A DNA stretch of 63,982 nt, filler included, from Octopus bimaculoides (lineage: Eukaryota), in the NCBI RefSeq assembly GCF_001194135.2. It is 6 parts of 5 records of this genome, joined end to end, with 100 filler letters (N's around TTAATTAATTAA, not from the genome) between each part and the next. Parts side by side here need not be neighbours in the genome. Positions count along the whole stretch, not along the records: positions 1 to 25,259 come from NC_069006.1; 5 more parts are not named here. One strand, given 5' to 3'. Shown piece after piece: positions 87 through 24,285 of the stretch (positions are counted from its first letter, which is position 1; each line of letters starts with the position of its first letter). The notes under the pieces were generated by a model, which ran no database searches, was not told where the DNA came from, and saw only the letters and a program-made list of their open reading frames with translations. Position numbers and translations under genes: made by a program.

Positions 87-359
87 TTACAGACTCTCTA
101 ACCAGTCTATCTCCCAATTTTGAGCTGCAATTTTACGCTCATTTCTTGCTTTGCTTTTTTCCGCACTGCGACGTAACTTTTCTGCTGGGATTTTTGATAT
201 AGAGAAAGGGGTTACAGCAACCCGGCTAAAGCGAGGGCAAGTGCTGCTGCTCCATACATTCAACTTCCTTCTCAGAGATGCAGAAATCTTGGTTTCTGTC
301 ATATTCTTGCTGATATACAATTCAACGTTGTCTATTTTGTTGTTGTAAATCATCAGAAT
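87..359 (-). CDS. Exon 21 (terminal coding exon)
   Basis: ttgttttgcag|[18 protein letters not shown]...[30 protein letters not shown]; 273 nt, phase 0; the 3' UTR runs off the window start. Confidence 0.8.
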   Translation of the reverse strand: MLMIYNNKIDNVELYISKNMTETKISASLRRKLNVWSSSTCPRFSRVAVTPFSISKIPAEKLRRSAEKSKARNERKIAAQNWEIDWLESL

Positions 360-1020
360 CTGCAAAACAAGATGACATTTTTCTGTAATTAACCATTTAG
401 CATTTAAACAGACCACATGATTCAGGGTTCAGTCCCACTGTGTGGAACCTTGAGCAACTATTTTTTTTTACTATAGCCTCAAGCTGACCAAAGTCTTGTG
501 AGAGGATTTGGTTGAGGGAAACTGAAAGAAGCCTGAGGCACCAGTACCCCACCCTTACTTCACTGCTTGCTTTATATTCAGCTTTGCACTGCACACATAT
601 ATATCTTATATATAAAATAAATCTCTGTGTGTGTGTTTGTTTTTCACATGAAAACGGCTGCCCGAATTGGTCCCATACTTGGGGTGCATGAAGAGTTTGA
701 CTTGGAATACAATAAAATGGTCTTGGTTTATTTTTTTTTTATCAAAAATAAATAATATTGCTTTATATAAGATTAACTTCTTTAAAAAAGTTTTTCAATG
801 TTAATTTCTGGTACTGACGTAGTAACTGCAGCTAGCTCGACATACACATGTATGTCTGATGTAGCAACTGTGGCTAGCTACACACACATGGATGTCTGAT
901 GTAGCAGCTGCAGCTAGCTACACACACACATGGATGTCTGATGTAGCAACTGTGGCTAGCTACACACACACATAGATGGATAGATAGCTAGCTAGCTAGC
1001 TAGCTAGATAGATAGATAGG

Positions 1021-1051
<31 letters not shown>

Positions 1052-2309
1052 GATGGATAGATATATAGAGATAGATTGGATAGATAGATAGATAGATAGA
1101 TAAAGAGGTAGACAGACAGATTAGATAGATAGATAGATAGATAGATAGGCAGGCTGAGAGGTAGATAGATATAGATAGATATAGATAAATAAATATAGCT
1201 AGAGAGATAGATAGATTTAGATTTAAATAAAAGCGGTTAAAATGTAAATACTCATCAACAGTGTATTGTACACATTCATGTGTGTATGTGTAGCTAGCAT
1301 CCAAAATTCCTACAAATATACTTTACGAGTGATTCTCAACAAGAAGGGCAAGAGAGGTACAAGAACATTTCTGGCATCAGGATGACCATTGTAGTGTTTC
1401 CGTAAAAGATGCTGCACAACAACAAGAACAGTAAAAAGCCTGATTAGAAACTTCAAGACTGCACTTGAAACAATTCTACCTGACTCCAGCAAATACAAGG
1501 GAGTAAGAAAAGAGTACTGTGTTAAGTAAGTCTGAGTTTATAATCTGAATGAAACTGGGTCCTTCTGCTTATATATATATATCTCAAGAGGTCAAGAGTT
1601 CAATTCCTGAAGCAGCCAGTCTGTTGTGTCCTTGGGCAAGACTTCATTTTACATTGCTCCAAAGCACTGAAGTAAAAACGAGCGGGGATGGTGGTGGCAG
1701 TGATGGTGGCATTGGTGTTGCTGATAGTGCTGAAGGTGGTGGTGGTGGTGGTTGTGCTGGTGGTGGAGGTGGTGGTGATGGTGGAGGTGGTGATGGTGGA
1801 GGTGGTGGTGATGGTGGAGGTGGTGGTGGTTGTGATGGTGGTAATGATGGTGGCGGCAATGATGATGACGACGACGACAACGATGAAGAGTTGAACAAAC
1901 AAACAGAAGTAGCCATTTACCTTGAGGACATTTCGAAGAACATCAACATCTTTGTCCGTCTCCAGAAACACGATGACTTTACCCGAGGCTCTCATTGCAA
2001 GTTCTTGCTCCAAGAGTTCCATCAGAGGGGAAGGATTGTCATCTCCACCAAAGAGCAGTTCCTTTACCGTTTCACTCTCTTTAACATTGTACTTGGAGTC
2101 AAGAAGAGGCTCTGAAACAACAAAACCACTGCAGTTCATTCTCCTACAACTGTATTGATCTGTCTGTCTGTCTATGTATCTATCTACCTTATCTACATAT
2201 TTATCTATCTGTCTGTCTGTCTGTCTGTCTGTTCAACCATCCATCTGTCCACCTGTCTGTCTGCCTATGTATGTATGTATGTATGTATGTATGTATGTAT
2301 GTATGCATG

Positions 2310-2343
<34 letters not shown>

Positions 2344-5284
2344 TGTACATATGTATCTGTCTATAGATAGACAGATAGATAGTTACATACATACATATAT
2401 ATACACACACACATGTGTGTATGTATCTATGCATATATTAGTGTATGTATGTGGCTGTGTGCATATGTATGTATATATGTATATGTGAGTCTATGGCTGT
2501 GTTGCCATTAGGTCTGAAAATCGAATGGAAGTCTCAAAAGAACCTAACTGCAGTTCTTGGTGATCCAAAGCAGATATGCAATTTATGTGGGTGTCTTTTC
2601 AAAACAATGTCTGGTTTTAAAAGTCACATCAGACGCCATGATAGATCTAAGGTGTAAGTACAAGAGATGGTCAGAATTCTGCATAAAGAGCAGACAACCA
2701 CCATGGCTCTGTGTGTGTGTGTGTACATTTGAAAGAGAAAGACAGAGAATGTGTGAGATAATGTTAGAGATAAAGAAAGTGGAAAGCCAAGGAAGGAAAC
2801 CAATTTTCCTTGAGGAATGAAACCAATTTTCCTCCCACACCAGTCTCCTCCCACTAACACCCAACCGAATATAGATGCCTCACTTACAGCCTTCCCTCCT
2901 TCCCCTCCCCTAGCATTCCTACCTTCCTCCTTTCCCCTTCTTCCTCCTCCTCTTCTTCTTCTCATTCCTCCTATGCCCTTCTCTTTCCTCCTCTTCTTCA
3001 TCATCCTTCTCCTTCCCAGTTACATTCACAAAGTGTCCTCTCGCACTCTCTCTCTCTCTTCTGTATCTCTCTCTCTCTATTCTGTATCTCTCTCTCTCTC
3101 TTCTATATCTCTCTCTCTCTCTCTCTCTTCTCTATTTCTCTCTCCCTCTCTATTCCCATCTTTCACTCTCCCTCTGCCTCCCTCCCTCTCTCTCTTTCTC
3201 TCTTTCCTGCGAGGTGCTGATATTTACCAATGACCGCATAGAGAGGGATTGTCTCAATACAGATGTTGCCTTGTTCACAGGCCAAATGGTGGACCATGCT
3301 GTTGGTATTTGTGCTGCTGTAGAATGCGACGGTGTTGTGTAAGTTGGGAAAAGGCTTGCTGGCCTTATTCATGAATGTCCGTAGGAGCTGACTGCAAGCT
3401 TGAGTCTTTTGCAACCACACTGTCCCTGTAAAGGAAAGTATATATAGATATGTGTGTGTGTGTGTGTGTGTATTTGAAATTTATAGAAAAACAAAAGACA
3501 AAGACGGGTGTATGAACAATAAGCAGGTGTATTAGTTTGACGCTCGGAAAAAATGAAAAAGTTTTTTACGTTTCGAGCCTATGCTCTTCAACAGAAAGGA
3601 ATAAGAGAAAATAAACAGAGAGAGAATGAAAAAACTTGTACAGTTCAGCAGTCCAACATGGCAAATGATATATATATACATATATATATCTATATATTGT
3701 CATCATCATCATCATCATTTAACTGAGGACTGGCGAGCCAGAAGGCTGCACCAGGATCCAATCTGATCGGGCAAAATTTCTACTGCTGGATGCCCTTCCT
3801 AACGCCAACCATTCCGAGAGTGTAGTGGGTGCTTTTACATGCCACTGGCACGATGGCCAGTCAGGCAGTACTGGCAACGACCATGCTCAAAAGGTGTATT
3901 TTATGTGCCACCTGCACGGGAGCCAGTCCGGCGGCACTGGCAATGACCACACTCAAATGTAAGCCAATGTTCTCTTGTCATTTATTTAATTTCATATTAT
4001 GCTCTGTACTCAAGTAATGCTTTATTCTGAAGTATATATATATATTGAGTTTTTCTCCATTGAGGGTTCTTATGACGCAAGTTATTTGGTGACCTCACTG
4101 GTGCTGGTGGTACATAAAAAGCACCCAGTACACTCTGTAAAGTGGTTGGTATTAGGAAGGGCATCCAATTGCAGAAACCCTGTCAAAGCAAACAGCAGAG
4201 CTTGGTGTAGTCTTATGACTTGCCTATTCCTGTCAAACCTTCCAACCCATGCCAGCATGGAAAAGGGACATTAAAGGATGATGATGATGATGACACAATA
4301 CAAAATGATGCAAGGAGCTACTTTGATTGAAAAGTCAAAATAATTCAAAAACCAAATTAAACTCTACCTGATCCAGAACAACCACCGCAATTGTCAACCA
4401 AACATTTTCTGGTGTCTACCATTATGTCACTTGTATCCATAGCACTGGCACCGGCAGCAGAGATCAGCCGTTCTATAAATGTTGAGGTTTCTTTTTCACG
4501 TTGAGCCTGTGTAGATTTACACACGTCTTGCTCTTTGACATTGTTGTTGGTGCAGAAACTGCCAGAGAAGGAAAGTCTAGGATTACTTTCAATAAAATGA
4601 AGTCACTTTGAAAATAGTTCATGAAACTGTATCAGTGAGACAAACCTGAGAGTTTTTAACACTTTCATCACATTTGGCAAACAATGACTTCTTTGATTAC
4701 AGGGCCCCATGGAACTGATCATTAGCTTACTGTATTGCCATGGTGATAGGGACCAGGTCGTTAAAGGGAAACACAAGCAGAATAAATATCATGAAAATCA
4801 TTTGTTGGAATGCTCCAGTTTATTGCTTAAATATACATACATACAAACAAAACACCTTGTTGATGTTGAAATTCCAATGAAGGAGCCTTGAATCTAGGTT
4901 AGAAACCAACTCTTTCTCCATTGACAAGAAATCTTGAAATAAAACTGAACAATGACACACATACATACATACATTCATATATACATACGTACAGTAGTGG
5001 TCAAATGTTTGGAACATTTTTTTAGAAATTGAAATTCTTATGCTAAAGTACAATTCGATTCAAATATATAACTTTAGGCATTCAATATAAAAATTGTAAT
5101 TTTCAGATCTTTGTTTCAAACTTTTGGCCACAACAGTGTGCTAGTAATGTTAAGCAGAAGCAACAGAGTGACTCAAAGGCTGAGAGTTTCATGTGTTAAG
5201 GGCCAGCATACAAAACACTTTTCTGTTAAATCAGTCTGTTGCTTCTGCTAAATATCAATAAAAATATGCAAATACTCGTATTTT

Positions 5285-5338
<54 letters not shown>

Positions 5339-5902
5339 CATACACACACATGCAAACATATATATATGATATATTATATACAATGTATTGTTTGCCTTTT
5401 TTTGGTAGGATTGACAAAAAAAGGTAAATCCAGCAAGTGATAAATATTATTTAATAAATTCAGTATCTACATTTGAGCTACTGCAAGTTTCATGTTAAGA
5501 TACAGCAGTAACAAGGCATGTTTGTATAGCATACTCATCATTGATTTATTCTCCTTTTCTCTTTTTTTCTCAGGGAGTAGCCATGTTTATTGAACCTGAC
5601 TGATTGAAACTATTTGAATGGTTTCTGCTCTTTTAAGCCAGCTGGTCTCATCTATCTTCAGCCAAACGTTCCTCTTCCAAAATACAGTGACTCTGTCCCC
5701 ACTACAACCACCACCACTGCCATCACACCAAACCATTAGAAAGCATCTTTGAAACAACAGAGAAAAACTTACTCAGTTCCTTCTGAGTAGAGAGAAAGGT
5801 AATAAAAATCTTCCCCCAGAATGGGTTTCTTGCAAGCTTCTTCCAGGTCAGTCGATGATATCAAAGAACCACCTGTGATACGAACAATGATAGTAATAGA
5901 GC

Positions 5903-5946
<44 letters not shown>

Positions 5947-8049
5947 TCACAGTGGGTGCATTAGTTATGATATAAAGAATATTCAAATACATAACAAAAA
6001 TACCAGGACTAACAAGTGTATATAACATACAGAAAATAGCACTACTAGGCACCACACACATCCTTCGTAAAACACTTTCAATACAGTGAAAATAAGGACA
6101 CCACAACAAACCACAGCACATACCCAAGGCACACAGAGCTGTGCTCGGTAGTGCAGTGAAAGCACGTAATAATGACTATTGAATAATAATAATAATAATA
6201 ATAATATATATAACATACAGAAAATTGCACTACTGGGCACTGCACACATCCTACGCAAAACACTTTCAATACAGTAACCATAAGAGCATTACAGCAAACC
6301 ACAGCACATACCCAAGGCGCACAGAGCTGCGCTCGGTAGTGAAGTGAAAGCACGTTATAAAAATAAAACTACTGAACAACAATAATAATAATAATAATAA
6401 TAATAATAATTCTTTCTTCTACTATAGGCACATGATCTGAAGTTTTGGGGGAGGGGTAAGTCAAATATCTAATGGAGGCCTCAAAAGACATTTTAAGATC
6501 CACAAAGATCAGAACTTAACTAAAGCTTCTTGGTGGTCCAAATCGGATATTCAATCTATATGGGTGCCTTTTCAATACATTGTCTGGATTTTAAAAAACC
6601 ACATCAGACGCCATGATGAATCTAAGGTGTAAATATAAGAGGTGGTCAGACTCTATATAAGGAGTAGACAACCACCATGTGTATGTATAATATTTTGTGT
6701 ATGTATAATATTTTGTGTATGTATAATATTTTGTGTATGTATAATATTTTGTGTATGTATAATATTTTGTGTATGCTGCCCTTTGAGACACTAATCCTTC
6801 ATTTGTCAACACGTGAACCTGTCTGTCTGCTTATTCTTCCTTCCCTCTCTAACATCCCCAACTATTCATTTGTTAACCTGACACAGAACAGTCTTACATA
6901 CCAACCTCAATTCCAATCCATACCTGTGTGCGCAGCATCAGAAAATTTCTTGAGCTGTCTAAAAGTTTCATTGTTTCCTCCAGCATTCCATATTTTTATG
7001 AAATGTTTTCCATTTTGTGGCCTCAGATCCACATAGATGGAGCTGCTGTGAAGTCCAATTCCGAGAGACCAATCAACTGCCCGTAACGACGGACTGCATT
7101 GTCGGATGACTGTTTCTGCCAGAAGTAAAAGATGGTTTGAATCTTTGTCTTTTGTTGTCAATTCAACTGCTTTTCCTGCCTGGAATCGGTGAAGTTCTTC
7201 AATATGGCGGTGATTTAGGTTGAGGAGATTGGCTGTTGATGAACGATAAGCACCATTAGGTGTGATGTGGAATTTCTCTGGGAAAGCTTCCTTAACTCTT
7301 TCTAAACATGTCAAAATCTGTGGATCAAGTCGGAAATAACGCACATTGGAAAAGAGAAAGTCTTTTATTTTGAAATTCGGAGAGAGGTTTGTCATCTTGT
7401 TTGACCCATCAAATAACATACTTGCCCCAGATTCTGACTGGAGAGGTCTTGGATAATCATATTCTTGTGACTGAGAAAATGGTGGTTGAACCACTAGTAA
7501 ACTCTGGCTGAGAAAATCCACCTCGTTTGCTACCCAGCCAGCTTGTTTCTTAACAAATACTTCAATGAATGAATGGCTACTATAGGAGACATAGTCAAAA
7601 CTGGCACATATGGCCAATAAAGAAAGTTGCTGGAGGTATAATCCCGGGTTTGCTGTTGTTGTGAGCCGTAATCCTCTACAATAAAGATAAAATGAAATAA
7701 TGAAAAGAACTATATTCATTATATTTTGGTAAAAATGGTTACTAACTATTTTTAACTCAATATATAATGTTGGGTGTCTGGAAGTTTTTCGTTTTTGTTT
7801 TGATGGAGGCTTGAGTGTGAGTGTTTGTAGATTCTAGGTTTAAACATGTTGCTGGTTAACAACATCATAAACAATACCTAAAAGGAAAATTGTAATTGCT
7901 TACCTGCCTTCTGTGTACAAGGGATGAAATTGGTCAGGTTTGGGCTTGTATTCCGAAGCTTCTTTATGACTCATTAGGACTTTAATAACTGCAGATAGAT
8001 ATAACATTACTTTATCAGGATGTAACTGCACACACACATATATAGACAT

Positions 8050-8083
<34 letters not shown>

Positions 8084-8275
8084 GGACTGGTGAGTGTATT
8101 TATAACTAAGGTGAAAATCAAAATCAATACATAAGAAAAAGGGTATAAATTTGAAGATATTTTATGAGAAGCTGAAGCTTCTTGAATCAGAACTGGGTTC
8201 GATGGTGTCTATTATTGAAGTATTTGAACAAATGGAAGCCTGATACTTAAAGCTTTGGATTCAAGGATGAAGATG

Positions 8276-8314
<39 letters not shown>

Positions 8315-11300
8315 GTTTCAAATTTTGCCACAATGGCAGCAATTTTGGGGGAGGAGATGAATTGATTACATCGACCCCCAGTGTTTCACTGGTCCTTAAT
8401 TTATCGACTCTGAGAGGATGAAAGGCAAAGTCGACCTCGGCAGAATTTTACCTTTCATCCTTTCAGGGTTAATGATGATAATACACACACACACACACAC
8501 ACACACATTTACAACAACAAGAAATGATTTTCCTACCTGTTTTTAGAGCTGGTTTCTTTGCTGGAAAGTAATTAAAAATAATAATTATTTTTTGATCAAA
8601 GGTAATATTGGTGATTAGGGATCATTGACTAGCGGTTAGGGACTTATGATAGAAGTTGGGGATTAAGTATTAGGGATTAGAGTTGAAGATTATGCATTAG
8701 TTATTAGCAAATGGAAGAAAAGATTTACAATTTTCATAATTACAAACAGCAAGCTAAGGGAAATAACCCAAGTCCTGTAAATTTAGAATCTTCCAGCATT
8801 CCATAAAATAGCACCAAATGGTGTTTGCCTCTTAATTGGAGAATGAAAACAAACACCCAATGGCAACTCAGAAAGGAAAAGAGAGAGATAATTTCAGGAA
8901 AATAAAAATTAATTACATAGAAAATAAAAATTTTTTATGCTTAGAAGAGAAATATGATGTCCATTAGCAAGCAAGGGTACAATGACTTTCGACCTGTTCC
9001 CATCTTATTTGCCCTCATCAAGGAGACAATGCCAGATATATTTTGATCTTATTGCACCACTTGTAATTTTAGTTTAATTGAAAATATTTTGCAGCTTACC
9101 TCCAACTCAACCATCTCTATAGTAACTGTACTTAGCTGTATAGTTTTTATGGCAGAAGGTACCCACAGACTATATGTGTGCACACACATGTGGGTATGTG
9201 TATACATCATCATCAACATTATCATCATCACCATTTAATGTCTGCTTTCCATGCTGGCATGGGTTGGATGCATCAAGCTGCAATTGTCTGTTTTGACCTG
9301 GTTTCTATGGCTGGGTACCTTTCCTAATGTCCCCCATTTTGCAGAGCGCATTGGGTGCTCTGTATGTAGGCACAGCATTAGTAAGGTGACCAAGGAACTT
9401 ACAAGACGTGAAACCCTCAACTCTGTGGGGGTGGGGGGTTGTGTTTGGGGAGGTGACTTTGAGCCAGGTGATGAGAAGTTAAAGCATGATAAAGGGACAG
9501 AAACAGGTGTCTTGCTGTAGAAGAGATACATAGCTACCCCAGTTGGAAAAAGAGAGAGAAAATAGTTAAGAGGTGTTAGAGTATATTTGTACAGAACTTG
9601 AACTGTAAAAGAATTTTTTTTCTTTATCTTCTGTCATCTGGAAATTGCCATAATCCTTACCTGTTCTAAAATTATCACCTCCTCTAGAAATAGTCAGCAT
9701 CATTTTTATGTTATCAAAAATTGGCAAGGTTGTTTTACTCATATCATAGAATGCTTCTCCTTTCAGTGACGCCACCATTTCAATTCACCAATTTCATCTT
9801 GTAATAACTCACCTTGCAGCCAAATGTTCATTAAACGAGATAACTCTCGCAGACGACTTGCCAGACGTCGACTCATAACACGTCTATTGCACCATTCCCA
9901 AGGTTCATCTGTTGCACTTGCTCGACTGCAATCGTCTCTGCAACATCTTAGAGTGTTTCCACACCAATTCTTTGACGGTCCCTCTGACTCAAACTCGATA
10001 TCGTTAAAAGGGTACACGTATAAACTGTAAAAACACAACATAAAATAAAGAGATATAATAGGACCAGCGACAAGCTGGTGCTCCAGATTGACCACAGTCT
10101 AATGTTTGAAACTTGCAAAAGGTAAAAAAAAAAAAAAAAGGACGACGTCCACTGTTTTANNNNNNNNNNGACGACGTCCACTGTTTTAAATCAGAAGTGA
10201 CACACATTTATAATGTAGTCTAAGGTTTATCATGCCAGGGAAAAAGACAAGATGGCCAGACTTGTATGAAAAAGCAAACATTAACCTTTTTGGTACCAAT
10301 CCAAATGAGACTGCCCCTAGTCTAAGGTAGAACCACAAAGATTCCCATTAAAATGTTATATTAGTCTAAGTTTTAAACACCAGATTAATAATGAGAAAAT
10401 GGTTTTACTAAATTCTTGATTCATTTTAAGAATTAATTGAAACATAACAGTGTATTTCTGCAGAAATATGATAGCAAAAGGATTAAACTGATTAACGAAC
10501 AATACAGATCGTTAAATCCAAAATGATAAAAACAAAACGATTATCTTTGTTTTTCACAAAATAAATTTACTTCAAATTTTCTTCTCAACACTTGATTTTT
10601 TAAAATTATAATTACAAAAAATATGGTCATGTGGTAAGAAGTTTGTTTCTCAACCACATGGCTCTGGGTTCAGTCCCACTGTGTAGTACCTTGGGCAAGT
10701 GTCTTCTATTATAGTCACAGGCCAAACAAAGCCTTCGGAGTGGATTTGGTAGATGGAAACTAAAAGGAGTCCGTCGTATATATATGTCTTTGTGCTTTAC
10801 CCCTGTCACCACTGACAACAGGTGTTGGTTTGTTTATTTCTTTGGCAAAAACAGACCGACAGGGAAAATACTAAATTTGGGTCGGCAAAAATTGACTCTA
10901 ATTTCGTAATCTTTGTTCTTAACGCTCAAACTAGAGCAAGTAATGCAGGGGAGATAACTCCAGAAATGCAGTTTATTTAACCCCCCTCCATTCCCCACTA
11001 TTGCACCCTGTTATCATTAAATTCTCCTTTATCTTTTACTTCAGTCGTTAAACTGCGGCCATGGACATCTGCTTCGAAACCGCCAGCTACTATATCCAGA
11101 CTATGAATTCATATTCATACCAACAATAATCGGAGCACTAGGTTTTGTTAGTAAATGCTTAAAGGAGAATCTGGATAAACTGGGGTTTTCAGAAAGAGAA
11201 ATTGACCAAATAGTTCATACATTACAAGTGCAATCTGTGAGTGGAACAGTAAAAATATGCAAGACTTTTCTCAAGTTCCAAATGTGAATTTGTCTATGTT

Positions 11301-14300
11301 AACTACATCCCAAAGATGGAGCCTTGTTGGATACTGGTTCCCACCTCAGTGGAAGATTTCTAATAATTAAAAAATAGAAGAGACATACATACATACATAT
11401 AAACAGGCTTGGATAACCTTAACAAATGATTTAATAGCACTGTTAACACAGTAGAACACAGTATTGACGAATAAAAGTGTTTAATATACTTTGTTTTATA
11501 TTAGGGCTGCATAACAAAATACGGTCTCCCTACAAGCCATCAATGAAATATCTCATAGCTTTTAGAGATTGATGATTGTTATTCTTAGAATGACATTGTA
11601 AGATAGGTGTGAGAGGTCTGATCTGGCCAGTTCAAATATAAAACAGGAAAAATATTTTAGCTGGATGTGGCTGGTTTCGGTGCTAAAAAGTTAAGCTCTA
11701 ATCTACACTGAGCCCTTTTTGGTGCCACACGTTTACAAGGATTCTGTGAAGTTTCATGTTTTACAATTTCTCGCAGGGATTACTCACCTGGAATAGTCTT
11801 TGGTGTTGGTTCGGTCATTTGCAACATCAACAGGGCCACACACTTCATCTGCTGTCATATTTTCTGGGAATGTGAATCCAACACGGAACGGCTTGTTCAA
11901 CAGGTCATCACACATACTGATATCAGAGCCTGCAATACAAGGCAATTACAAAGTATATTCAAGATAATTTATATCATCATCATCATAATCATCATGTGGT
12001 GGTCAATGGTAAATATCAGTATGGGGCAGGGGAGAGTGAAAGAGAGAGAGAGAGAGAGAGGAGTGTCTCAGGGAGGGGTGGGGGTTATAAGTGGCATTTA
12101 CAGGAAAGCTAAAATTAACTGTAACGTTGATAACGCTTATAGGTGAGAGGATTATTTTGATGGTCTGAAACTCAAAACAGGTTTTTTCAATGAAATATCT
12201 TACTTGTGGCATTCATTGAAGTCATAAACATTTTCTTGTCCGATATTTCCTCCTCAGTCTCTGAACTGGAATCAGATTTTTCTGGGGGTTCCTCCATACA
12301 AACGGCCAGTTCTAAGTAAGCATCAGTTTTCACTTGTCGGACATATTGGAAGTCGGCACAGAGGGCGAGTTTTCCCAACACATCGAGTGTGGTGGGGCTT
12401 TTATCCAGCGACAACCCCTTGTTTGGATTGTTAGCATCAATGGGTTTACTTATTCCAATCTGTATTGCTCTGGCTTCACCATAGAACAAAGAATCCTTTT
12501 TATTATTTGGTAACTGAGGGGGATTTGCTGGTGGAGCTTCAGTCCAGGATTTCAGAACAATCAGCTTTCCTGCAAAAGACAAAATATTGTCATACATACA
12601 TACATACATATATATATATACACGAGTGAGATCGAAGGATTTTCGAGCGAGATTGAAGGATTTTCAAGCAAGATCGTTGCCAGTGCCCCTGGACTGGCTC
12701 TTGTGCAGGTGGCACATAAAATACACCATTTTGAGCGTGGCCGTTGCCAGTACCGCCTGACTGGCCTTTGTGCGGGTGACACATAAAAGCACCCACTACA
12801 CTCTCTGAGTGGTTAGCGTTAGGAAGGGCATCCAGCTGTAGAAACTCTGCCAAGTCAGATTGGAGCCTGGTGTAGCCATCTGGCTTCACCAGTCCTCAGT
12901 CAAATCGTCCAATCCATGCTAGCATGGAAAGCGGACGTTAAACGATGAACGGCAGAGGCACACACACACACATAGATACATATATATACAAGGTGCCTTC
13001 CAGAAGTTTGAAGATGATTTTTTAGGAGAGGCAGTTTTAACCATCCTAGATTATTGTATTTTTAGTCTCTCATTACTTTATATCATATCTAATAAGCTGA
13101 CCTGCCAACTTTTGATATTCTAGATGGAAGGAGATGGCTGTAGTAGCCCTCCAGATACACCCTGCTAAACTTTGCTTGTCATGGCTGACTAGTTTTGCAG
13201 CTCGCTAGTTTAGCAGCTTGCTGCCTTTACATTATTTCTGTTTACCAAATTCCATTACCAAGATATTGGTCAACGAAGGGTCTAGAAGCAGACATTTGCC
13301 CAAGGAATCATTTATGCGGACCAATTAAAACAAACATAAAAATAAGAGAAAAAAATATACTTATTGGTCTTACTGTTTGGCCAGGTAAGCCTGGACATGA
13401 GGACAAGTTTTGAGAGTTGCAAAGCCAATCTTGGTGTCACCATTCTATCAGGACATTGGTTTGTCTTGGAATTCTTCACTGAATGTTTGAAACAATCCTG
13501 ACACTTTCTTCCTTGTTGTTGGCACCAAGTTCCATTTGTTAGTTCTGACATGAAGACAATGTCATCTCCAAGAAGGTAAAGCAGACTGAAAATAAATAAG
13601 AACAAAGCAGTATGGGTAGTGATGCTGTTGTTGTTGTTGTTGTTGTTTAGGATCATAATTTCAGCTTAGGCATTGTGTACATTATCCAATGTAAGTTGAA
13701 TTGGCTACATTATCCAATGTGAGTTTAATTAATTAGGCATCATGTACCTTAGGCTATATTATGCAATGCATGTTTAATGAATTAAAGGTGACATATTTGG
13801 GGTTATAATAAGAGACAATTAGGAGTTATAATGAAGGTAATAAAGGGATATTAAAGGGGTATTGGGATTATAATAAGATGTTATTGGGGGTTATAATAAA
13901 GAGATATAAGGGGTTATTAAATGTTATAATAAGAGGCTATTAAAGATTGTAATAAAGGGGTACCAGGGGTTACAATAAGGGGGCATTTTTTTGTCTTTGA
14001 TCAGTAATTGTTGTTTCCTATTTGCTTCTATCTAGAAATCAAAGGAAATGTCTACCATTCCCTTCAAAGTTTGCTTTTGTAACCTGGACATCAATGTCTC
14101 GAAACTGATCCATTTTCCATTTCAGACAGATTCAGTGCTGAGTTGCTGAAGTATAAATATTGCTATAGCAAATATTCTGACCAGTACCACGGATTTGCTT
14201 GTCAGTTGCTTGACCACAACTACTTGAGCATGTCCCTTAGTGGCTGACGATATGTGCATCTCTGACCATGAACAGGCGTAGTGGTGGGGGGCATCATAGC

Positions 14301-15024: not shown

Positions 15025-15095
<71 letters not shown>

Positions 15096-15715
15096 TTAGG
15101 GAAAATAACCAATTTTCAAGAACTCATCGATGAAAATCCACTATCACATATAGAAAAATTAATAATTAAAAGCACAATAAATGAGTATAATATAAAGTAA
15201 AGTAAATATCATAAGATAAATATAATAAAAAGATTACACGTGTTTCATAACCAATTTTCAAATAGAAAAGAAATTTAAATCGATTAAAATCAATTGAAAT
15301 TATCGAAAATAAATTCTATTCAAAAATATAGCTACTCGTCAGATCGCAAGTATATATATATATATATATACATACATACACATATATATTACATATGAAT
15401 ATGTATATACACACACACACACACACACACATGCACACTCACATACATTTCTTGGAGTGATGACCCAAGAAATATAAAGATTTGTTGCAGATATTTACCT
15501 GATCTCTACCGGAAAGGTGTGAAGTGGGTACATCTTATCCATGAACAGACCAAGGTGAGCTGTGAATTTCAACTGGAAGTAACAAGCGAAAAATAACTTG
15601 TACACACACATATATATATATATGCACACATATATACATATGAGTGTGTGTGTTTGTGTGAGAGTGTACATGTGCGTCTGTGTATGTATGCATATATATA
15701 TATATATATATATAT

Positions 15716-15758
<43 letters not shown>

Positions 15759-17105
15759 TACATATATATATGTACGAGGGGGAAAAGAAAAGTTCTTGGT
15801 TTTGGATAAAAGAAAATACAGGATGATCAGTTAATTATCATTTTATTCAACATATTCCCTTCTCAGATTCACACGCTTATTGCAGCAATTCTTCAGTTTT
15901 TCTAAGCCTTGTAAAAGATCTCAGAAGGTTAGGCCTCCAACCAGGCCTTTTGTGATATCCTTAAAGCCAAAACCTTTTCAGTACCCTTATGTGTATATAT
16001 ACATATACATGTATGTATGTATGTATGTATGTATGTATGTATGTATATGTAGCTATGTCTGCATATATGTACACACACACACAGATATACTAACCTGATG
16101 TGAGAACTGCATTAGCATCTTCATGTCCTGTTGTGCATCAGCCTGTACACGAGTTTCGTTACTTAATTGCCAATCGGTAACTTTCACATCTTGTGTACTT
16201 CTGTTACCCTTCTCGTACTCCATCACTGCCATTAAAACAATCAGAAACTTAGAATAATTATTTCAGTTTTGTATTTAATTTTCAAGATTCTTGATCTGAA
16301 TTCATGTGTTGAAACAGATTTTGTTGTGTCTTGGGAGGGTCATCACGCTAATAATAATAAATACGCACACTGGTTCAATTTCACTTCTTTTAAAATTATT
16401 TGTCAATTGGTTAATCATTTAATCAATTAACTAATAGATTGTTCAATTAATCGCTTAGCTGATCAATTAATCAGTTGTGTTTATCAAAGGCCTTTTGCCA
16501 TAATCATAACTTCTTCAATGTCTTTCCCCTCTATTCTAGATCTACTTTTGTCAATGAAGACGTCATGAGGTTTTGACTGACACAACTGATTAATCAATAA
16601 ACTGAATGATTAATCAAACAATTTATTAGTTGCTTAAATAATTAGCCAATTGACTAATAATAATAAAGAAATGAATTTGAATCAGTGCATGTGTTATTGT
16701 TGGCATAATGATTGTCCGAAGATGCAACAAGATATTGGCTTCAAATTTTTGGTGCAAGGCCAATGAGTTCAGGGGAGGGACTAAGATGATTACATCGACC
16801 CCAGTACGCAACTGGTACTTATTTTATTGACCCCAAAAGGATGAATGACAAAGTCGACCTCAGCAGAATTTGAACTCACTCTGACTTACAGAATCTTGTC
16901 AAACTATCCAACCCATGCCAGCAGGGAAGATAGACACTAAAAGAGGGTAATGATGGTGATGATGACGATGACGATGATGACATGGCAATGATGGTAAATA
17001 ATAATAATGAGGATTTCAAATTTTTGCCACAAGGGTAGCTTGAGGGAGGGGATTAAGTTGATTACATCGACCTCAGTGCATAACTGGTACTTATTTATTC
17101 AACCC

Positions 17106-17151
<46 letters not shown>

Positions 17152-18800
17152 GTCCTGCTGCAATGACAGGCAGTGGCTCTCATGCTTCTGATCTTAACTA
17201 ATTGGAAGTGCTATGGCGTACATGCTTTGTCTTGGCATAAAAGATGGGCTACAGCAAATATTCTGCTCAATACCACAGATTTGCTTGTCGCCTGCATGAT
17301 TTTAACTAGTTGGGTATGTCCCTTCGTGGTTGATGATATGTTCATCTCTGATAACAAGCAGAAGTAGTGGAGGAGAATCATACCTATGTGTTGAGAGGAA
17401 TTCTTTGGGGTTTGAATAATTCACCCCAGGAAAGATGTGTTTTGTTCACCCTCGTTAAACAAACCTTATTCAGGGACCTTTTGAGTCGGATGGGCTACTC
17501 AACCTCCCCACCCCAAAATTGTAACTGGGCCTCACCTGCATGGTCATGTGCAGTTTATCTTGATATGTGGTCACCATGTCGTGCATACGTGGTTATGATG
17601 CATCTGCCTTGTGCACCCTTATCAGACGGGTAGTCAACATGGGTATATCGAGCTCCATATATTTGTACCCGTGTCACTTTGATGCTCTCTCACTCAATAA
17701 CAACCACAACAACAATAAACATGATGAATATATGTCCCCCACCCCACCCACCCCTTACCTGTTGTGTAATCTGCCATAGAGTTTACCACTGTAGTCACAT
17801 GACTTCTTCCAGGAGCAGCGAAAACATTGAAGTTGAGACTTGATTCTANNNNNNNNNNNNNNNNNNNNNNNNNNNNNNNNNNNNNNNNNNNNNNNNNNNN
17901 NNNNNNNNNNNNNNNNNNNNNNNNNNNNNNNNNNNNNNNNNCTTCACAGCAGTCTTGTTAAATATCTCTGTATTTAATTCCAGCAATGACTTCAAACTGA
18001 CATTCACCTGAGAAAATGGTTTTAAAAATCAAAAGAAATATTAACCATTTAGCATTCCGATTATTTCATTTAAATTTAATCTTTATTATTCACATTATTT
18101 TGGATTAATCATGTATTATCTTGTGGCTTTCAGATTTCAATCATGTGACTGTCTGTGTTTAAGATTATAAATGTTGGGTAGGTGTGAGAGGCTGGATCTG
18201 GCCAGTTTGAACATAAAACAGGAAGAATATTTGGGTGAGTCATGGCTAGATTGGAAACCAATTATGATTTGATGGTTAGAGTGGTAAGAGGCAGAGTCAA
18301 TGGTTAGATGGCTGTGGAGTCCAGTTATACCACGTGGAGCTGTGTGAGGTTGTTTGGTTAAGTACCTTGTGTTTTCTGATTTCATATTGAGTAGCACTTA
18401 CCTGATTATAAAAGGATTTGACACAACTTATTCCTTCCGGGTCTTTGGCAATGACCAGCTCCCTACAAAGAAATTATACTTACAAAGACGTATGTAGACT
18501 CATGCATACACATACATACAGTGGTGGACTGGGTCTAAAAATATTGGTTGCCAGGAGACTAAGGGGGCCCACCAGCAACTACAATGCTTTAATTTAATTT
18601 TTTTTGTTAAAAGTATTCTTTCCAACTGTCTACAAACACAGCCAGGCTGAAACAATTAATCCATTCTTCCAGGAGTGAATAAAAAATCCTCAAACTTGAG
18701 GGGATGGGCCCCTTAGATACTAATATGGATTCTAAAGATGCAGGGGCCTGCTTGCCATTGGGCAAGCTGGCAACCTGGCAACCTGGCCAGTCTGCCACTG

Positions 18801-18832
<32 letters not shown>

Positions 18833-20121
18833 CATACCCACATACATACATGCACACATGCCTACATATGTTAACTACTGGAATATGTAATACACAGCCT
18901 AAATGCCAATCTTGAGAAAGAAACCGGCTCTTTCTTTATTGGCAAGAAATCTTGAAATAGACTGAATAATGACATACATACATACACACATACATACATA
19001 CACACACTTGAGCAGTTGTAATGCATCTAAGCACTGTATACAAAGAACTCGTTATTATTATAAATAATTTTTAAATACAAGCAGAGAAAATTGCAAAGAG
19101 AGACGGTTGCCCCACCAACTTACATATCAAAAGATATATTGGATCTTGTTTCGCAGTTTGAAACCTTGACTGATAGATCCATACTTGCTCCAGAAATGTT
19201 GCTGTTGTTGTAGTCGTCATCAAGAATCTTAACTAAATCATCACTGTCCTTCAATTTGATCAGGTGGAATGGTCTGGTTGAAAATCGGTTGAGGAAAGTT
19301 ACCACATTTTGTGATGTGACAGAAGTGTTTTGGTGAGTTGTTGGTTGAATGGAAGCTGACTGTTTGGTGTTGGATGGTCTCAAATGGATGGAGAAGGTGG
19401 TGGTGTTTTCAAACAGACCCAAGGAACTTATTAAAAATAGTGCAAAGATTGAATTTATTGGAAAAATATATAAATAAATAAATAAATATATATATATATA
19501 TAAATAGAAATATTTATTTCTTTATTGCCCACAAGGGGCTAAACATAGAGGGGACAAACAAGGACAGATAAAGGGATTAAGTCGATTACATCAACCTCAG
19601 TGCATAACTGGTACTTATTTAATCAACCCCGAAAGGATGAAAGTCGACCTCAGTGGAATTTGAACTCAGAACGTAGCAGCAGACGAAATACTTGCTGCCT
19701 TAATAAATAGAAATACTAAATAGATAAGTGATTGTGTGCCACTTATATATATTTTCAAACAGATGTTTAGCAGCGCCACCTTAGCTGAACAGTTATTCTG
19801 TGCAGAGGAGGGGAAATAACCCAGAAACTACAGTGGCCTGCAGATATTGCTTTGTACTGATTGGGGATGCTGAACTCCCCTGTTTGAAAATATAAGGACA
19901 CAGATATTGTGTCTTATGGCCAGCTGGAGACGATGTTTACTGGAGTTAAACAATAGTAGCATTCGTCCCAACCAAGACTGCCATATTATGATGACAAATA
20001 GTCTTTACTTTAAATATATCATCATCATCATCATCATCGTTTAACGTCCGCTTTCCATGCTAGCATGGGTTGGACGATTTGACTGAGGACTGGTGAAACC
20101 GGATGGCTACACCAGGCTCTA

Positions 20122-20169
<48 letters not shown>

Positions 20170-21986
20170 TGTATGTAGGTATATAGATATGTATATATAT
20201 ATATGTGTGTGTGTGTGTATATCAATGCAAAATGAATGAAAATACATTTAACTTTAAAATTTCATATACCACCATTATCATCATCATTGTTGTTATTGTC
20301 ATTATCCTCATTATTTCATGATCATCATCAACATCGTCATTGTCATCATCATTGTTGTCATCATCATCATTGTTGTCATCATCATCATTGTTATTTTTCA
20401 TTGTAATTGTCATTCTCAGAGTTGTCATTATGAGTGATCTAATCATCGTTGTCATCACCACTGTCATTGTCATTGTTGTGGTGACCGTTCATCAATGTTG
20501 TCATCATCATCATCATCATCCCCATTCTCATTATCAATTATCATCATTGTCAGTTGTCATTACGATCATCATAGTCATCACCAGCACCATTGTCATCATT
20601 GTCATCATCATCATCATCATCGTCATTATCATCATCATCATCATCTGCCCCAGAATGATATGAAAAGTAAAAGTCAACCCTGCTGACATTTTGTCTTTAT
20701 AATACAAAGGGAGATAACTCAAAATGTGTCTTTACCTTATTTCCTTCATGAATACATTAATTCGACGATGATTAGCAAAGCTGACATGGGTCACTGCACC
20801 ATAGATCCCTTTCTGGTGAGGGTTCAAAGAATTTAGGAAACATTCCCATTTTGGTCCACCAACAACAATCTGCCCTGCGGTCCAGTTGCGGCCCAACGAA
20901 TCATCTTTTCCAATGAGAATTATCTTATTTTTCTCACATTTTAATTTCTAAGCAAAGCAAAAACCAAACAAAAACGAAAAAAGATAAAATCTATAAAATA
21001 AACAGCAAAATAACAAAGTAAATATTTCTCATTATACTTGATTGGGTAGACATGTCAACAGGGATTGGGACATTTGCGTTTAACCGCATGGATCTGGGTT
21101 CAAGCCTAATGCCCAAAACCATGAGTAAGTGTTTTCTGCCAGGGTTAAAGGTTAACTAAATGCCTCGTCTGTCTTCTTCTTCCATTAGATGCTTCTATAT
21201 GCAATGCATCTCTAAAAATTAAGATGAGTATCTTCCACCATAACCTTGAAATAGCAGCCAAGTTCCCCTCAAATCACACCATAGTATTTATTCAAAAAGA
21301 GGATGCACTGTATTATGATGACCAAGATGTAGCATGTCTGTAAAGAGGTAGGAAGGTCATGACTGGAAATCCTTTGATTATAGGTATGTGTGATCAAGGC
21401 TGACCTGCGATTCACCCTCAGAACATCATAAATTATTTCTCTCTCTACTCTCAACAGAAATGGGAGGAGGGAGAGCCATTTATGGATTAACACATCAAAA
21501 CAAAACGAACATACATTGATATGGTCGATATTGAGTCATGAGAAGGCGTGGTCATTACAGAGGCTGATTAGATAGAAAGTGGGTGTGTGCGACTGTGAAT
21601 CTATGTGTGTTTGTGTGTGAGTGTGCTTAGGAGAGTGTATATGTGTAAGAGATAGTTTGTTTGTATGTGTGTGAGACTGTATGTGTGTGTATGTAACTGT
21701 TTATGATATACTGTGTTTGTGTTTGTGTGTTTGACTGTGTATATGTGAGACCCAATGCATATCTGTATGTGTGTGTGTGTGTGTGTGATAAACCTGTTGA
21801 ACTCACCTTTATTGAAGAATAAACATCTAAATAAATGATGTCGGTCAGTCTTCCTGTGGTGGCCACCTCTACTTGCTGTCCACTGATTTCTTGGACTGAT
21901 GTTTGACCAATGTCCACCCCAGCATTAACAAAGGTCAACTTAGTCACACCAGCACACATTAACAACATTCCAATTAAAAGAGCCAT
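87..21986 (-). CDS. 21-exon gene, ~1,420-aa secreted protein: signal peptide + degenerate Hedge-like lobe + 2 Hedge (Hh-N)-like domains + peptidase M15A-like domain + novel Cys-containing C-terminus
   Basis: Exons 21807-21986, 20736-20947, 19124-19426, 18402-18462, 17759-18007 (gap), 16095-16225, 15499-15572, 14761-14898, 14504-14680, 13374-13585, 12204-12569, 11788-11929, 9813-10024, 8537-8560, 7904-7988, 6924-7675, 5773-5872, 4368-4558, 3228-3425, 1921-2111, 87-359. All have GT/AG boundaries and mutually compatible phases, giving one open frame. An in-frame TGA lies 15 nt upstream of the ATG; the TAA stop is at 87-89. Confidence 0.85.
409..537 (+). mobile_element. tRNA-like SINE family A, degenerate copy
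   Basis: gggttcagtcccactgtgtgg...gaaactgaaagaagcc, shared with copies at 10627, 24132 and 57908. Confidence 0.6.
820..975. repeat. ~40-bp minisatellite, ~4 copies
   Basis: gatgtagcaactgtggctagctacacacacatggatgtct repeated with variants. Confidence 0.8.
1921..2111 (-). CDS. Exon 20
   Basis: gttgtttcag|(E)PLLDSKYNV...[34 protein letters not shown]|gtaaat; 191 nt, phase 1->0. Confidence 0.85.
2490..2705 (+). mobile_element. 3' end of an RTE-like LINE (C-terminal C2H2 finger + 3' UTR)
   Basis: [21 protein letters not shown] (C-x2-C-x12-H-x3-H); a second copy lies at 6465-6677; both end in microsatellite or minisatellite tails. Confidence 0.6.
3228..3425 (-). CDS. Exon 19
   Basis: cctttacag|(G)[17 protein letters not shown]...[21 protein letters not shown]|gtaaat; 198 nt, phase 1->1. 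Confidence 0.85.
3485..3625 (-). mobile_element. Penelope-associated short repeat (terminal-repeat-like fragment)
   Basis: rc: tttctgttgaagagcataggctcgaaacgta...aaactaatacacc...ttgtcttttgttt; homologous to 57740-57860, which follows a Penelope ORF. Confidence 0.5.
3700..3960 (-). mobile_element. RTE-LINE 3'-UTR-derived repeat (family C) with (CAT)n tail
   Basis: tggatgcccttcctaacgccaacc motif. Other copies lie at about 4090-4290(+), 9205-9400(-), 12680-12945(+), 20022-20120(-), 26740-26900(+), 28850-29150(+), 30447-30590(+) and 62534-62676(-). The sequence matches the 3' UTR of the RTE at 32.4-32.8 kb. Confidence 0.75.
4368..4558 (-). CDS. Exon 18
   Basis: ctctggcag|[23 protein letters not shown]...[14 protein letters not shown]|gtagag; 191 nt, phase 2->1. 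Confidence 0.85.
5773..5872 (-). CDS. Exon 17
   Basis: tatcacag|(G)[32 protein letters not shown](D)|gtaagt; 100 nt, phase 1->2. Confidence 0.85.
5946..6375 (+). mobile_element. Two tandem 5'-truncated R4/Dong-like (RLE) non-LTR 3' ends inside a (TAA)n tract
   Basis: Encode ...[11 protein letters not shown](T/A)[10 protein letters not shown] plus the same 3' UTR as 22984-23345; (TAA)n lies at 5903-5945, 6182-6205 and 6380-6410. Confidence 0.7.
6465..6677 (+). mobile_element. Second RTE-like 3' fragment
   Basis: acatcagacgccatgat...tctaaggtgtaa...gacaaccaccatg, homologous to 2490-2705. Confidence 0.55.
6680..6775. repeat. 18-bp minisatellite, ~5 copies
   Basis: (gtgtatgtataatatttt)n; produces the spurious CMYNIL-repeat ORF. 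Confidence 0.9.
6924..7675 (-). CDS. Exon 16 (end of Hedge B + whole M15A-like domain)
   Basis: ctttattgtag|GLRLTTT...[26 protein letters not shown]...[11 protein letters not shown]...[31 protein letters not shown]...AGKAVEL...[16 protein letters not shown]...AAHT|gtatgg; 752 nt, phase 2->1. Confidence 0.92.
7904..7988 (-). CDS. Exon 15
   Basis: tatctgcag|(V)[27 protein letters not shown](R)|gtaagc; 85 nt, phase 1->2. Confidence 0.85.
8314..8452 (-). mobile_element. SINE family B with (TTA)n tail
   Basis: gtcgactttgcctttcatcct...gtcgatgtaatc...ccctcccccaaaatt on the minus strand; other copies at about 6410-6460, 16736-16880, 17030-17105, 19518-19696 (all -) and 26345-26510(+). Confidence 0.7.
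8537..8560 (-). CDS. Exon 14 (24-nt microexon)
   Basis: tttaattactttccag|CAAAGAAACCAGCTCTAAAAACAG|gtagga = (A)KKPALKT; phase 1->1. Confidence 0.6.
9813..10024 (-). CDS. Exon 13 (Hedge module B core with Cys insert)
   Basis: tttttacag|[70 protein letters not shown]|gtgagt; 212 nt, phase 2->1. Confidence 0.9.
10281..10486. mobile_element. piggyBac-like MITE (~200 bp)
   Basis: TTAA-cctttttggtacca ... atgatagcaaaagga-TTAA: imperfect TIRs with TTAA at both ends. Confidence 0.5.
10627..10790 (+). mobile_element. SINE family A
   Basis: gtggtaagaagtttg...ccaaccacatggctctgggttcagtccc (A/B-box-like head). Confidence 0.7.
11083..11300 (+). mobile_element. 3' end of a second RLE-type non-LTR family
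   Basis: [34 protein letters not shown]...[19 protein letters not shown]; the IPxIIGALG motif is shared with the R4/Dong-like copies. Confidence 0.55.
11788..11929 (-). CDS. Exon 12 (start of Hedge module B)
   Basis: tattgcag|[46 protein letters not shown](S)|gtgagt; 142 nt, phase 1->2. Confidence 0.9.
12204..12569 (-). CDS. Exon 11 (Hedge module A C-half + acidic linker)
   Basis: cttttgcag|[10 protein letters not shown]...[14 protein letters not shown]...[26 protein letters not shown]...MNAT|gtaaga; 366 nt, phase 1->1. Confidence 0.9.
13374..13585 (-). CDS. Exon 10 (Hedge module A core with Cys insert)
   Basis: ttattttcag|[70 protein letters not shown]|gtaaga; 212 nt, phase 2->1. Confidence 0.9.
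13770..13990. repeat. Degenerate ~22-bp minisatellite
   Basis: ggggttataataagaga-like units. Confidence 0.6.
14150..14330 (+). repeat. Unnamed interspersed repeat (two copies)
   Basis: agcaaatattctg...accac(g/a)gatttgcttgtc...tgtccctt(a/c)gtgg..gatatgt.catctctga, also at 17245-17440. Confidence 0.65.
14504..14680 (-). CDS. Exon 9 (start of Hedge module A)
   Basis: ttgttgcag|[15 protein letters not shown]...[18 protein letters not shown](N)|gtaaat; 177 nt, phase 2->2. Confidence 0.75.
14761..14898 (-). CDS. Exon 8
   Basis: ttttccacag|[24 protein letters not shown]...TETN(I)|gtaagt; 138 nt, phase 2->2. Confidence 0.8.
15499..15572 (-). CDS. Exon 7
   Basis: tacttccag|[24 protein letters not shown](S)|gtaaat; 74 nt, phase 0->2. 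Confidence 0.75.
16095..16225 (-). CDS. Exon 6
   Basis: aatggcag|(V)[43 protein letters not shown]|gttagt; 131 nt, phase 1->0. Confidence 0.75.
17759..18007 (-). CDS. Exon 5 (interrupted by N-gap 17849-17941)
   Basis: ttttctcag|[22 protein letters not shown]-(gap)[29 protein letters not shown]|gtaagg; phase 0->1 requires the gap length estimate to be off by 1-2 nt, or two exons. Confidence 0.65.
18402..18462 (-). CDS. Exon 4
   Basis: tttctttgtag|[20 protein letters not shown]|gtaagt; 61 nt, phase 2->0. Confidence 0.8.
19124..19426 (-). CDS. Exon 3
   Basis: [17 protein letters not shown]...SNISFD(M)|gtaagt; 303 nt, phase 2->2; matches the ORF track entry 19120-19422. Confidence 0.8.
20736..20947 (-). 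CDS. Exon 2
   Basis: ttgcttag|[13 protein letters not shown]...[18 protein letters not shown](S)|gtaaag; 212 nt, phase 0->2. Confidence 0.8.
21807..21986 (-). CDS. Exon 1 (start codon, signal peptide)
   Basis: [27 protein letters not shown]...YSSIK; hydrophobic N-terminus ending in VNA; donor AAG|GTGAGT, phase 0. Confidence 0.8.
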
Positions 21987-24131: not shown

Positions 24132-24285
24132 CAGGTATGGCTGTGAGGTAAGAAGCTTGCTTTCCAACCACATGGTTCCAGATTCAGTCCCACTGTGTGG
24201 CATCTCAGGCAAGTGTATTCTACTATAGCCACAGGTCAACCAAAGCCTTATGAGTGGATTTGGTAGATGGAAACCGAAAGAAGCC
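24132..24285 (+). mobile_element. SINE family A
   Basis: ggctgtgaggtaagaagcttgctttccaaccacatggttcc...gaaagaagcc. Confidence 0.7.

Follow-up and report, generated by a model that had tools for sequence, protein, structure and literature searches.

The minus strand of positions 87 to 21986 in a stretch of Octopus bimaculoides DNA of 63,982 nucleotides (nt; the window) carries a gene of 22 exons, read from 21986 to 87, with an open reading frame (ORF) of 1390 amino acids (aa). Its product is laid out as an N-terminal region comprising segments designated N0 and mid (~400 aa together), two modules related to the N-terminal signalling domain of Hedgehog (Hh-N; Hedge A and Hedge B, beginning at about residues 417 and 666), an M15A-like module, and a C-terminal domain with ten cysteines. 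Taking all of the evidence together, we consider it reasonably probable that this is a secreted binding or scaffold protein that combines Hedge, M15A-like and CD38-like domains, and it would best be explained as a soluble protein, built from dead enzyme folds, that acts outside the cell as a multivalent binder or scaffold. The original prediction, made from the DNA sequence, had described a multi-Hedge protein ending in an M15A-like domain; both types of domain are found, but a CD38-like end of ~315 aa had gone unrecognised and ~416 aa at the N-terminus had been left unaccounted for.

Hedge A is encoded by exons 10-12 (14680-14504, 13585-13374 and 12569-12204; all parts of this gene are on the minus strand), and Hedge B, spanning 7540 to 11929, by exons 13-16 (11929-11788, 10024-9813, the micro-exon 8560-8537, and 7988-7904) together with the first ~45 codons of exon 17. 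Each module alone exceeds the gathering score of 22.1 bits for the Pfam family HH_signal (PF01085), with 24.5 bits for Hedge A (expectation value, E, 2.4e-5) and 36.0 bits for Hedge B (E 7.3e-9), in agreement with the claim of two Hh-N-like modules. The match amounts to 60.7 bits (E 1.8e-16) in a 931-aa model of the protein and 52.3 bits (E 6.8e-14) in the full 1390-aa protein (P0073). When Hedge B was compared with the PDB using phmmer, the best 25 matches were all to Hh-N, and each of the motifs that had been quoted for module B lies on the minus strand where it had been placed, including PLYTEGRGLRLTT, which crosses the splice junction 7904|7675. Hedge A and Hedge B match one another with an hhalign E of 1.6e-70, and because their middle exons (exons 11 and 14) have the same length, 212 nt, and the same phases, the two modules appear to have arisen by tandem duplication.

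A profile of 18 Hedge modules from the family matches the N-terminal domain of Sonic hedgehog (ShhN, 1vhh) with an E of 1.9e-24, in two collinear stretches that between them span residues 9-157 of ShhN (chain length 162). The proposed match along the whole length of Shh-N is thus obtained with the family profile, but not with the octopus modules alone, in which only the C-terminal ~90 residues match Hh-N significantly; the earlier alignment of their N-terminal half is plausible but falls short of significance by itself. Family Hedge modules also share an insertion of ~26 residues with four conserved cysteines ('WCG...R.C.DC......RC') between the Hh-N motifs 'FxxEE' and 'DRVM', which separates the two matching stretches and in octopus is encoded at 9982-9870 and in the equivalent part of exon 11. 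Judged by these comparisons, Hedge A and Hedge B are genuinely homologous to Hh-N. The positions of the ShhN zinc ligands H140/D147/H182 are occupied by Y/Q/E in Hedge A and by Y/R/E in Hedge B, and two of the six calcium ligands are retained in Hedge A and one of the six in Hedge B.

The M15A-like module, which we refer to as domC, is encoded with a linker at 6924-7539, in the same exon 17 (7675-6924) that contains the end of Hedge B. It scores 21.2 bits against HH_signal, which is below threshold, and octopus domC gives no match to Pfam M15 or Peptidase_M15_3. However, a phmmer search with the exon 7674-6910 finds the Peptidase_M15_3-type relatives P0055 (E 7.5e-8), P0060 (2.5e-6), P0062 (foraminiferal, 6.7e-5) and P0066 (3.4e-4), all of which pass Pfam Peptidase_M15_3 (P0055 with 1.5e-15 and P0066 with 3.7e-16), and the relatives that do so include small secreted-type proteins. 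domC can be aligned end to end with Peptidase_M15_3 proteins, with the common motifs 'LS.NF.v.DF', 'YFRL.P.L..CL', 'YR', 'G.A' and 'IG.GL...Y.D.R', and it matches the Hedge modules of the family with hhalign E values of 2e-4 to 4e-5. An AlphaFold model of exon 17, generated from a 35-sequence alignment, has a predicted local distance difference test score (pLDDT) of 92.4, and when the domC model was compared with the PDB using Foldseek the top 29 matches were all to Hh-N (best E 0.035, template modelling scores 0.36-0.45), with the M15B peptidase LdcB at rank 47. The phmmer relatives, the full-length alignment and the Foldseek matches to Hh-N all support the earlier view that the third module is M15A-like and has the same LAS fold. 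The zinc triad H-x6-D ... H is replaced by F/E/Y in octopus domC, and we conclude that it is a catalytically dead M15A-type LAS module.

Exons 18-22 (5872-5773, 4558-4368, 3425-3228, 2111-1921, and 359-87, which includes the stop codon) encode a C-terminal domain of ~315 residues that is conserved across the family, with nine invariant cysteines, a tenth shared by at least 90% of members, an 'NP.P' motif, a dibasic site and a terminal 'NWExxW'. Its AlphaFold model, from 26 sequences, has a pLDDT of 90 and a predicted template modelling score of 0.89. Foldseek gave 65 matches in the PDB at E<=1e-3, and the 50 listed are all to CD38 or the Aplysia ADP-ribosyl cyclase (best E 4.5e-6, probability 1.0, ~260 aligned columns, template modelling score to target 0.49-0.59); the domain is therefore predicted to have a two-subdomain fold like that of CD38 and ADP-ribosyl cyclase. 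In CD38, E226 is the catalytic residue, and W125, E146 and W189 position the substrate. We aligned the family with a CD38 sequence that was confirmed against the PDB, and in this alignment, which is not significant, the E226 column contains Glu in nine of the 26 members including octopus, the W125 column Trp in 15 of 26, and the E146 column Asp or Glu in 20 of 26. No acidic residue or Trp is invariant in the domain and no catalytic Glu is conserved at the tentatively aligned position, and NADase or cyclase activity is doubtful. The dibasic site, in the last exon, reads 'KLRRS' in octopus and K/R-R-S in most members, and is followed by the helical 'NWExxW' tail; its conservation suggests processing by a proprotein convertase, which would cleave the protein near its C-terminus.

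The N0 segment begins in exon 1 (21807-21986; donor AAG|GTGAGT) with the start Met at 21986 and a signal-like hydrophobic stretch, and continues in exons 2 and 3 (20947-20736 and 19426-19124; residues ~61-232). The mid region (residues ~303-416) is encoded by exons 7-9 (16225-16095, 15572-15499 and 14898-14761) and is conserved with Argonauta. The N-terminus is conserved in the Argonauta hians orthologue (P0003), and N0 is homologous to the N-termini of the Argonauta, Sinanodonta and Batillaria proteins and, more weakly, of that from Haliotis; for the N-terminal ~416 residues no relatives were detected outside of the molluscs, and no Pfam or PDB match was found. A tblastn comparison of two Hint domains with the window gave a single weak match, to exon 2 (20947-20744; 32% identity over 69 aa, E 0.014), where the resemblance is to the C-terminal conserved Hint motif 'G.Y.P.T..GTI.V.....SCY...H..FAP.R'. 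Interpretation of N0 as a degenerate Hint domain is not supported (hhalign E 0.18, and the N0 profile matches nothing in the PDB or Pfam), and its interpretation as a fourth LAS module, from another resemblance of exon 2, was rejected because profile-profile comparisons with domC and Hedge give E values of 0.14-0.56.

Pfam gives no Hint match in P0073 or P0002 and no VWA or cadherin match in P0073, P0028, P0039 or P0048, and the GCF motif was not found in the protein. A hydropathy scan of the 1390-aa protein identifies the signal-like N-terminal stretch as the only one above threshold, with a hydrophilic C-terminus and neither a transmembrane segment nor a glycosylphosphatidylinositol-type tail, which agrees with the earlier description of the protein as Hog-less and anchor-less. 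There are 17 N-glycosylation sequons and 33 cysteines.

Searching 1.84 billion representative proteins with the large exon (7674-6910) using HMMER yielded 70 relatives, from which the architecture of the family was derived as a phmmer domain map. The core cassette consists of an M15A-like module, a Hedge module, a second M15A-like module and the CD38-like C-terminal domain, in proteins of ~900-970 aa whose named examples are sea-star (Asterias), crinoid (Anneissia), annelid (Owenia) and bivalve sequences; the modules at its two M15A-like positions are paralogues of each other (E 2e-30). A long form with N0, mid, Hedge A, Hedge B, M15A-like and C-terminal domains is present in the molluscs Octopus, Argonauta, Haliotis, Sinanodonta, Batillaria and Pecten, and Saccostrea also has the collinear orthologue architecture. 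In the 2253-aa protein of the sponge Oscarella pearsei (P0039) a Trypsin domain and two PLAT domains are located upstream of the cassette, and the 2145-aa choanoflagellate protein P0048 (Craspedida sp. UC1), in which the cassette is likewise embedded, contains C2, Peptidase_M15_4 (VanY-like) and HH_signal (27.9 bits) domains. Because the cassette is present in both a sponge and a choanoflagellate it predates animals, and the family is older than Hedgehog and constitutes a parallel lineage, not a Hedgehog derivative that has lost Hog; the initial description of the protein as a relative of the Hedgehog signalling domain needs to be revised in this respect. UniProt automatically names the orthologues 'Hedgehog N-terminal signalling domain-containing protein', and no account of the family emerged from literature searches by locus identifier, by Hedge-domain architecture or by the pairing of CD38 with Hedgehog. 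It had been left open whether the protein was already described; the sequence is already deposited, as 'uncharacterized' or with an automatic domain name only, and the protein is a new architectural variant among Hh/DD-peptidase proteins that no paper in the literature searched describes.

Three further proteins, P0057, P0051 and P0058 (cluster member P0093), have a signal-like N-terminus, an M15A-like domain related to the octopus module, LDLa, a Pro/Thr linker and a Hint/Hog domain beginning at 'W|CFP', a Hedgehog-like layout of peptidase plus Hog. P0057 and P0051 retain the H and D, with HVN as the last motif, and P0058 retains HVD. P0057 is encoded at L002:6001-7587 on a 120-kb ENA metagenome contig, and because it adjoins spectrin-repeat and IRS-domain genes its host is a eukaryote, probably a holozoan.

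The 1390-aa ORF is identical to the RefSeq protein XP_014775101.1 (P0073; O. bimaculoides LOC106872581, 'uncharacterized protein'), and mapping of this protein reproduces exactly the 21-junction model proposed earlier. Twenty of the 21 junctions have one single GT-AG solution each and keep the frame; junction 5 (17944|17845) lacks GT-AG and merely spans a gap of 93 Ns at 17849-17941, and is an assembly-gap artefact. A model constructed from splice sites only has 11 exons, all with GT-AG and compatible phases, and its ORF, 931 aa long, starts with the Met at 21986 and stops at a TGA at 6909-6907. The RefSeq model adds five small exons (18462-15499), the 24-nt micro-exon 8560-8537, and five C-terminal exons reached through the donor CAG|GTATGG at 6924, and as the orthologues and RefSeq model splice at this donor, the TGA was rejected as the stop codon. 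In a related cephalopod contig (SRR11869385, 1041 bp) CAA replaces the TGA and the donor is kept. Comparison with this contig gives a ratio of nonsynonymous to synonymous substitution rates (dN/dS) of 0.16 for exon 17, a value indicating that it is under purifying selection. The best match among the 70 relatives is XP_014775101.2 (LOC106872581, 1094 aa, 'uncharacterized protein'), which is 100% identical and in the same cluster as XP_014775101.1. The ORFs 21273-21148 and 21155-20994 were rejected as exons because their splice phases are incompatible, and an optional in-frame micro-exon at ~14459-14419 was rejected as it is not in the RefSeq model.

There are three runs of N in the piece of the window at 1-25259, at 10160-10169, 17849-17941 and 22530-22983. 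That at 10160-10169 lies within intron 13, which is 1763 nt long, and has no effect on the ORF; because a duplicated 19-mer, TAAAACAGTGGACGTCGTC, is present on both sides, this gap appears to be an assembly join. The gap at 17849-17941 follows exon 4 (18462-18402), within the region 17759-18462, and separates coding segments at 18007-17944 and 17845-17759. Because the frames are open from both sides, and the Argonauta orthologue has 37 additional residues at exactly this position, the gap is best explained as interrupting one coding exon. It probably hides ~37 codons, for a true length of ~1430 aa, of which ~1390 aa can be read. The older 1390-aa RefSeq model crossed the gap by a non-canonical pseudo-intron, whereas the current models have two loci that divide at this point, LOC128250892 (288 aa) and LOC106872581 (1094 aa; first residues MADYTT).

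The division of the locus in the newest RefSeq models, together with the lack of a genuine splice at junction 5, raises the question of whether the 22 exons are an annotation artefact, in which at least two neighbouring genes have been fused by gene prediction. We regard this as very improbable. The Argonauta protein is collinear over its full length, including the 37 extra residues at the position of the gap, and because it is collinear throughout, it shows the two-locus split to be an artefact of the gap. Moreover, all of the remaining junctions are in frame with unique GT-AG solutions, and the identical domain order is found in many phyla, in an Oscarella ORF labelled complete by its source, and in ORFs of ~918 aa on contigs of 3-4 kb. 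A single protein could still be an active enzyme, either a LAS peptidase with cell-wall or matrix substrates, or, through its C-terminal domain, a nicotinamide adenine dinucleotide (NAD) glycohydrolase or ADP-ribosyl cyclase. In favour of activity, CD38 and cyclase structures are the only ones that match the C-terminal model, octopus has Glu at the tentative E226 column, many members have Trp and Asp/Glu at the W125 and E146 columns, respectively, and there are relatives with intact M15A motifs (P0055, P0066 and P0057). Nonetheless we think enzymatic activity unlikely, given that the zinc triad is incomplete in all three octopus LAS modules, that the candidate catalytic column has Glu in just nine of 26 members with no invariant acidic residue or Trp in the domain, and that there is no sequence-level membership of Rib_hydrolays. 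Because none of the members examined has a complete zinc triad, the LAS modules are most likely binders and not peptidases.

What they might bind is a separate question, and the original prediction had included a decoy or ligand among the possible roles. On such a reading, a soluble Hedge array would bind Patched, Ihog/CDO/BOC or HHIP-type partners and modulate Hedgehog signalling. The zinc and calcium surface of ShhN mediates binding to HHIP, Ptch and CDO/BOC/Ihog. A role of this type is consistent with the true homology of the Hedge modules to Hh-N, with the apparent secretion of the protein, and with the retention of 'SLHYEGRA' and acidic calcium-site residues in echinoderm and annelid members, which nevertheless lack D147 and H182. 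In octopus, however, all three zinc ligands and four or five of the six calcium ligands are replaced in both modules, and because this surface is gone a canonical decoy role is unlikely there; engagement of Hedgehog receptors through it probably does not occur. Internal modules cannot provide an N-terminal palmitoylation site and there is no Hog for addition of cholesterol, and the protein would not be a lipid-modified Hedgehog ligand. The cassette is also present in a choanoflagellate and a sponge, groups that are not known to have canonical Hh ligand signalling. We therefore consider modulation of Hedgehog signalling distinctly unlikely, and of the soluble Hh-fold array originally envisaged, the solubility is supported by the signal-like N-terminus and lack of an anchor, with a scaffold role favoured over that of a decoy.

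As a soluble binder or scaffold, the protein may recognise polymers of the peptide or glycan type, for example proteoglycans of the matrix or pieces of microbial cell wall, and the C-terminal domain could have either a nucleotide-like ligand or a purely structural role. Several observations weigh against this interpretation. The binding role is one that we infer, and the signal peptide and the lack of transmembrane segments are deduced from the hydropathy scan. In its fold, domC matches Hh-N only moderately. The likeness to CD38 derives from the AlphaFold model and lacks sequence-level support: Rib_hydrolays (PF02267) has no match in the 26 members even at E<=10, the C-terminal profile matched nothing in the PDB or Pfam, and the hhalign comparison of the C-terminal family with CD38 is collinear but not significant (E 0.55). 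Octopus does have Glu at the tentative E226 column, which leaves some probability of NADase or cyclase activity, and non-mollusc members keep the first zinc ligand and most calcium ligands, so that other branches of the family may still bind metal.

The surrounding DNA (1-25259) has a G+C content of 36.7% and is rich in microsatellites, and the microsatellite-rich stretches yield many spurious ORFs. Interspersed repeat families are present in the introns and flanks at 412-528, 10630-10766 and 24144-24274, with further repeat pairs at 2539-2705/6511-6679, 3717-3946/12674-12905 and 5945-6406/23096-23370; ARAGORN identified no tRNA genes. One of the repeat families encodes a recurring 11-residue peptide, and a peptide motif in the rejected ORF 21155-20994 is repeated in several parts of the window.

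In the accounts of Bürglin (2008, PMC2362128), Roelink (2018, PMC6027127) and Fairclough (2013, PMC4054682), Hedge domains are confined to Hedgehog, Hedgling and the Hh-VWA proteins of choanoflagellates. The octopus protein resembles Hedgehog (Hh, Shh, Ihh, Dhh) in its homologous Hedge modules and its secretory route, but differs in the absence of Hog/Hint and the GCF site needed for cholesterol addition, in having internal Hedge modules with no N-terminal palmitoylated Cys, in the replacement of the zinc and most calcium ligands, in the 26-aa four-Cys insertion, which is absent from Hedgehog, and in the combination of two Hedge modules with M15A-like and CD38-like domains. Hedgling, reportedly described by Adamska in 2007, and Hh-VWA, which occur in choanoflagellates, sponges and cnidarians, are similar in being Hog-less, with an incomplete DD-peptidase motif and a pre-metazoan origin. 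However, Hedgling has an N-terminal Hedge domain beside VWA, and further along it contains cadherin repeats, EGF repeats and a membrane-spanning segment, features that were not detected in the octopus protein; here Hedge is flanked by M15A-like and then CD38-like domains, in a family that persists in bilaterians. With neither Hog/Hint nor VWA, cadherin or transmembrane regions, the predicted protein is neither Hedgehog nor Hedgling, as had been proposed.

The third module is alignable over its full length with Peptidase M15A/Peptidase_M15_3, but has the F/E/Y triad, falls below the Pfam threshold and is part of a eukaryotic secreted multidomain protein; the bacterial 'Hh/DD-peptidases' are zinc D,D-peptidases with the LAS fold (Roelink 2018, PMC6027127). 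With CD38, BST-1 and the Aplysia cyclase the C-terminal domain shares a predicted fold, ten conserved cysteines and an extracellular location, but it has no detectable sequence similarity, no invariant catalytic Glu or Trp, and an additional C-terminal helical extension with 'NWExxW' after the dibasic site. Hog is also found with non-Hedge N-termini (Bürglin 2008, PMC2362128), as in Lophohog, the nematode Warthog and Groundhog proteins and cnidarian Hint genes, whereas the octopus protein has no Hint of any kind; the M15A-like relatives fused to LDLa and Hint share with Lophohog-type proteins the wider question of how Hedge and Hog were joined. A 2022 survey of annelids reported Hh only, with Lophohog absent (PMC9695228).

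How the Hedgehog signalling domain arose is debated, with Hedgling-first and bacterial DD-peptidase transfer as the competing views, and because the family extends back to choanoflagellates the octopus gene bears on this question. One scenario, which we think rather unlikely to be correct, is that the cassette represents a third, pre-metazoan class of Hedge protein that survives in bilaterians, and that Hedge was born within eukaryotes when adjacent M15A-like modules duplicated and diverged, and not from Hedgling or by late bacterial transfer. Hedgehog would then be such a module joined to Hog, with P0051, P0057 and P0058, which come from eukaryotic metagenome contigs, as living intermediates of the peptidase plus Hog type. 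In members from one choanoflagellate, one sponge and several phyla of bilaterians, bona fide Hedge modules stand beside M15A-like paralogues, and the family is a concrete data set for LAS-fold phylogeny across Holozoa. The joint occurrence of Hh/DD-peptidase and CD38-like folds is not known from earlier reports, and if the fold assignment is true, the CD38 fold would predate animals. Some of the taxa with members contain species kept in laboratories (sea stars, Owenia and oysters), and an HH_signal match in a mollusc, annelid or echinoderm genome is not necessarily a Hedgehog gene.

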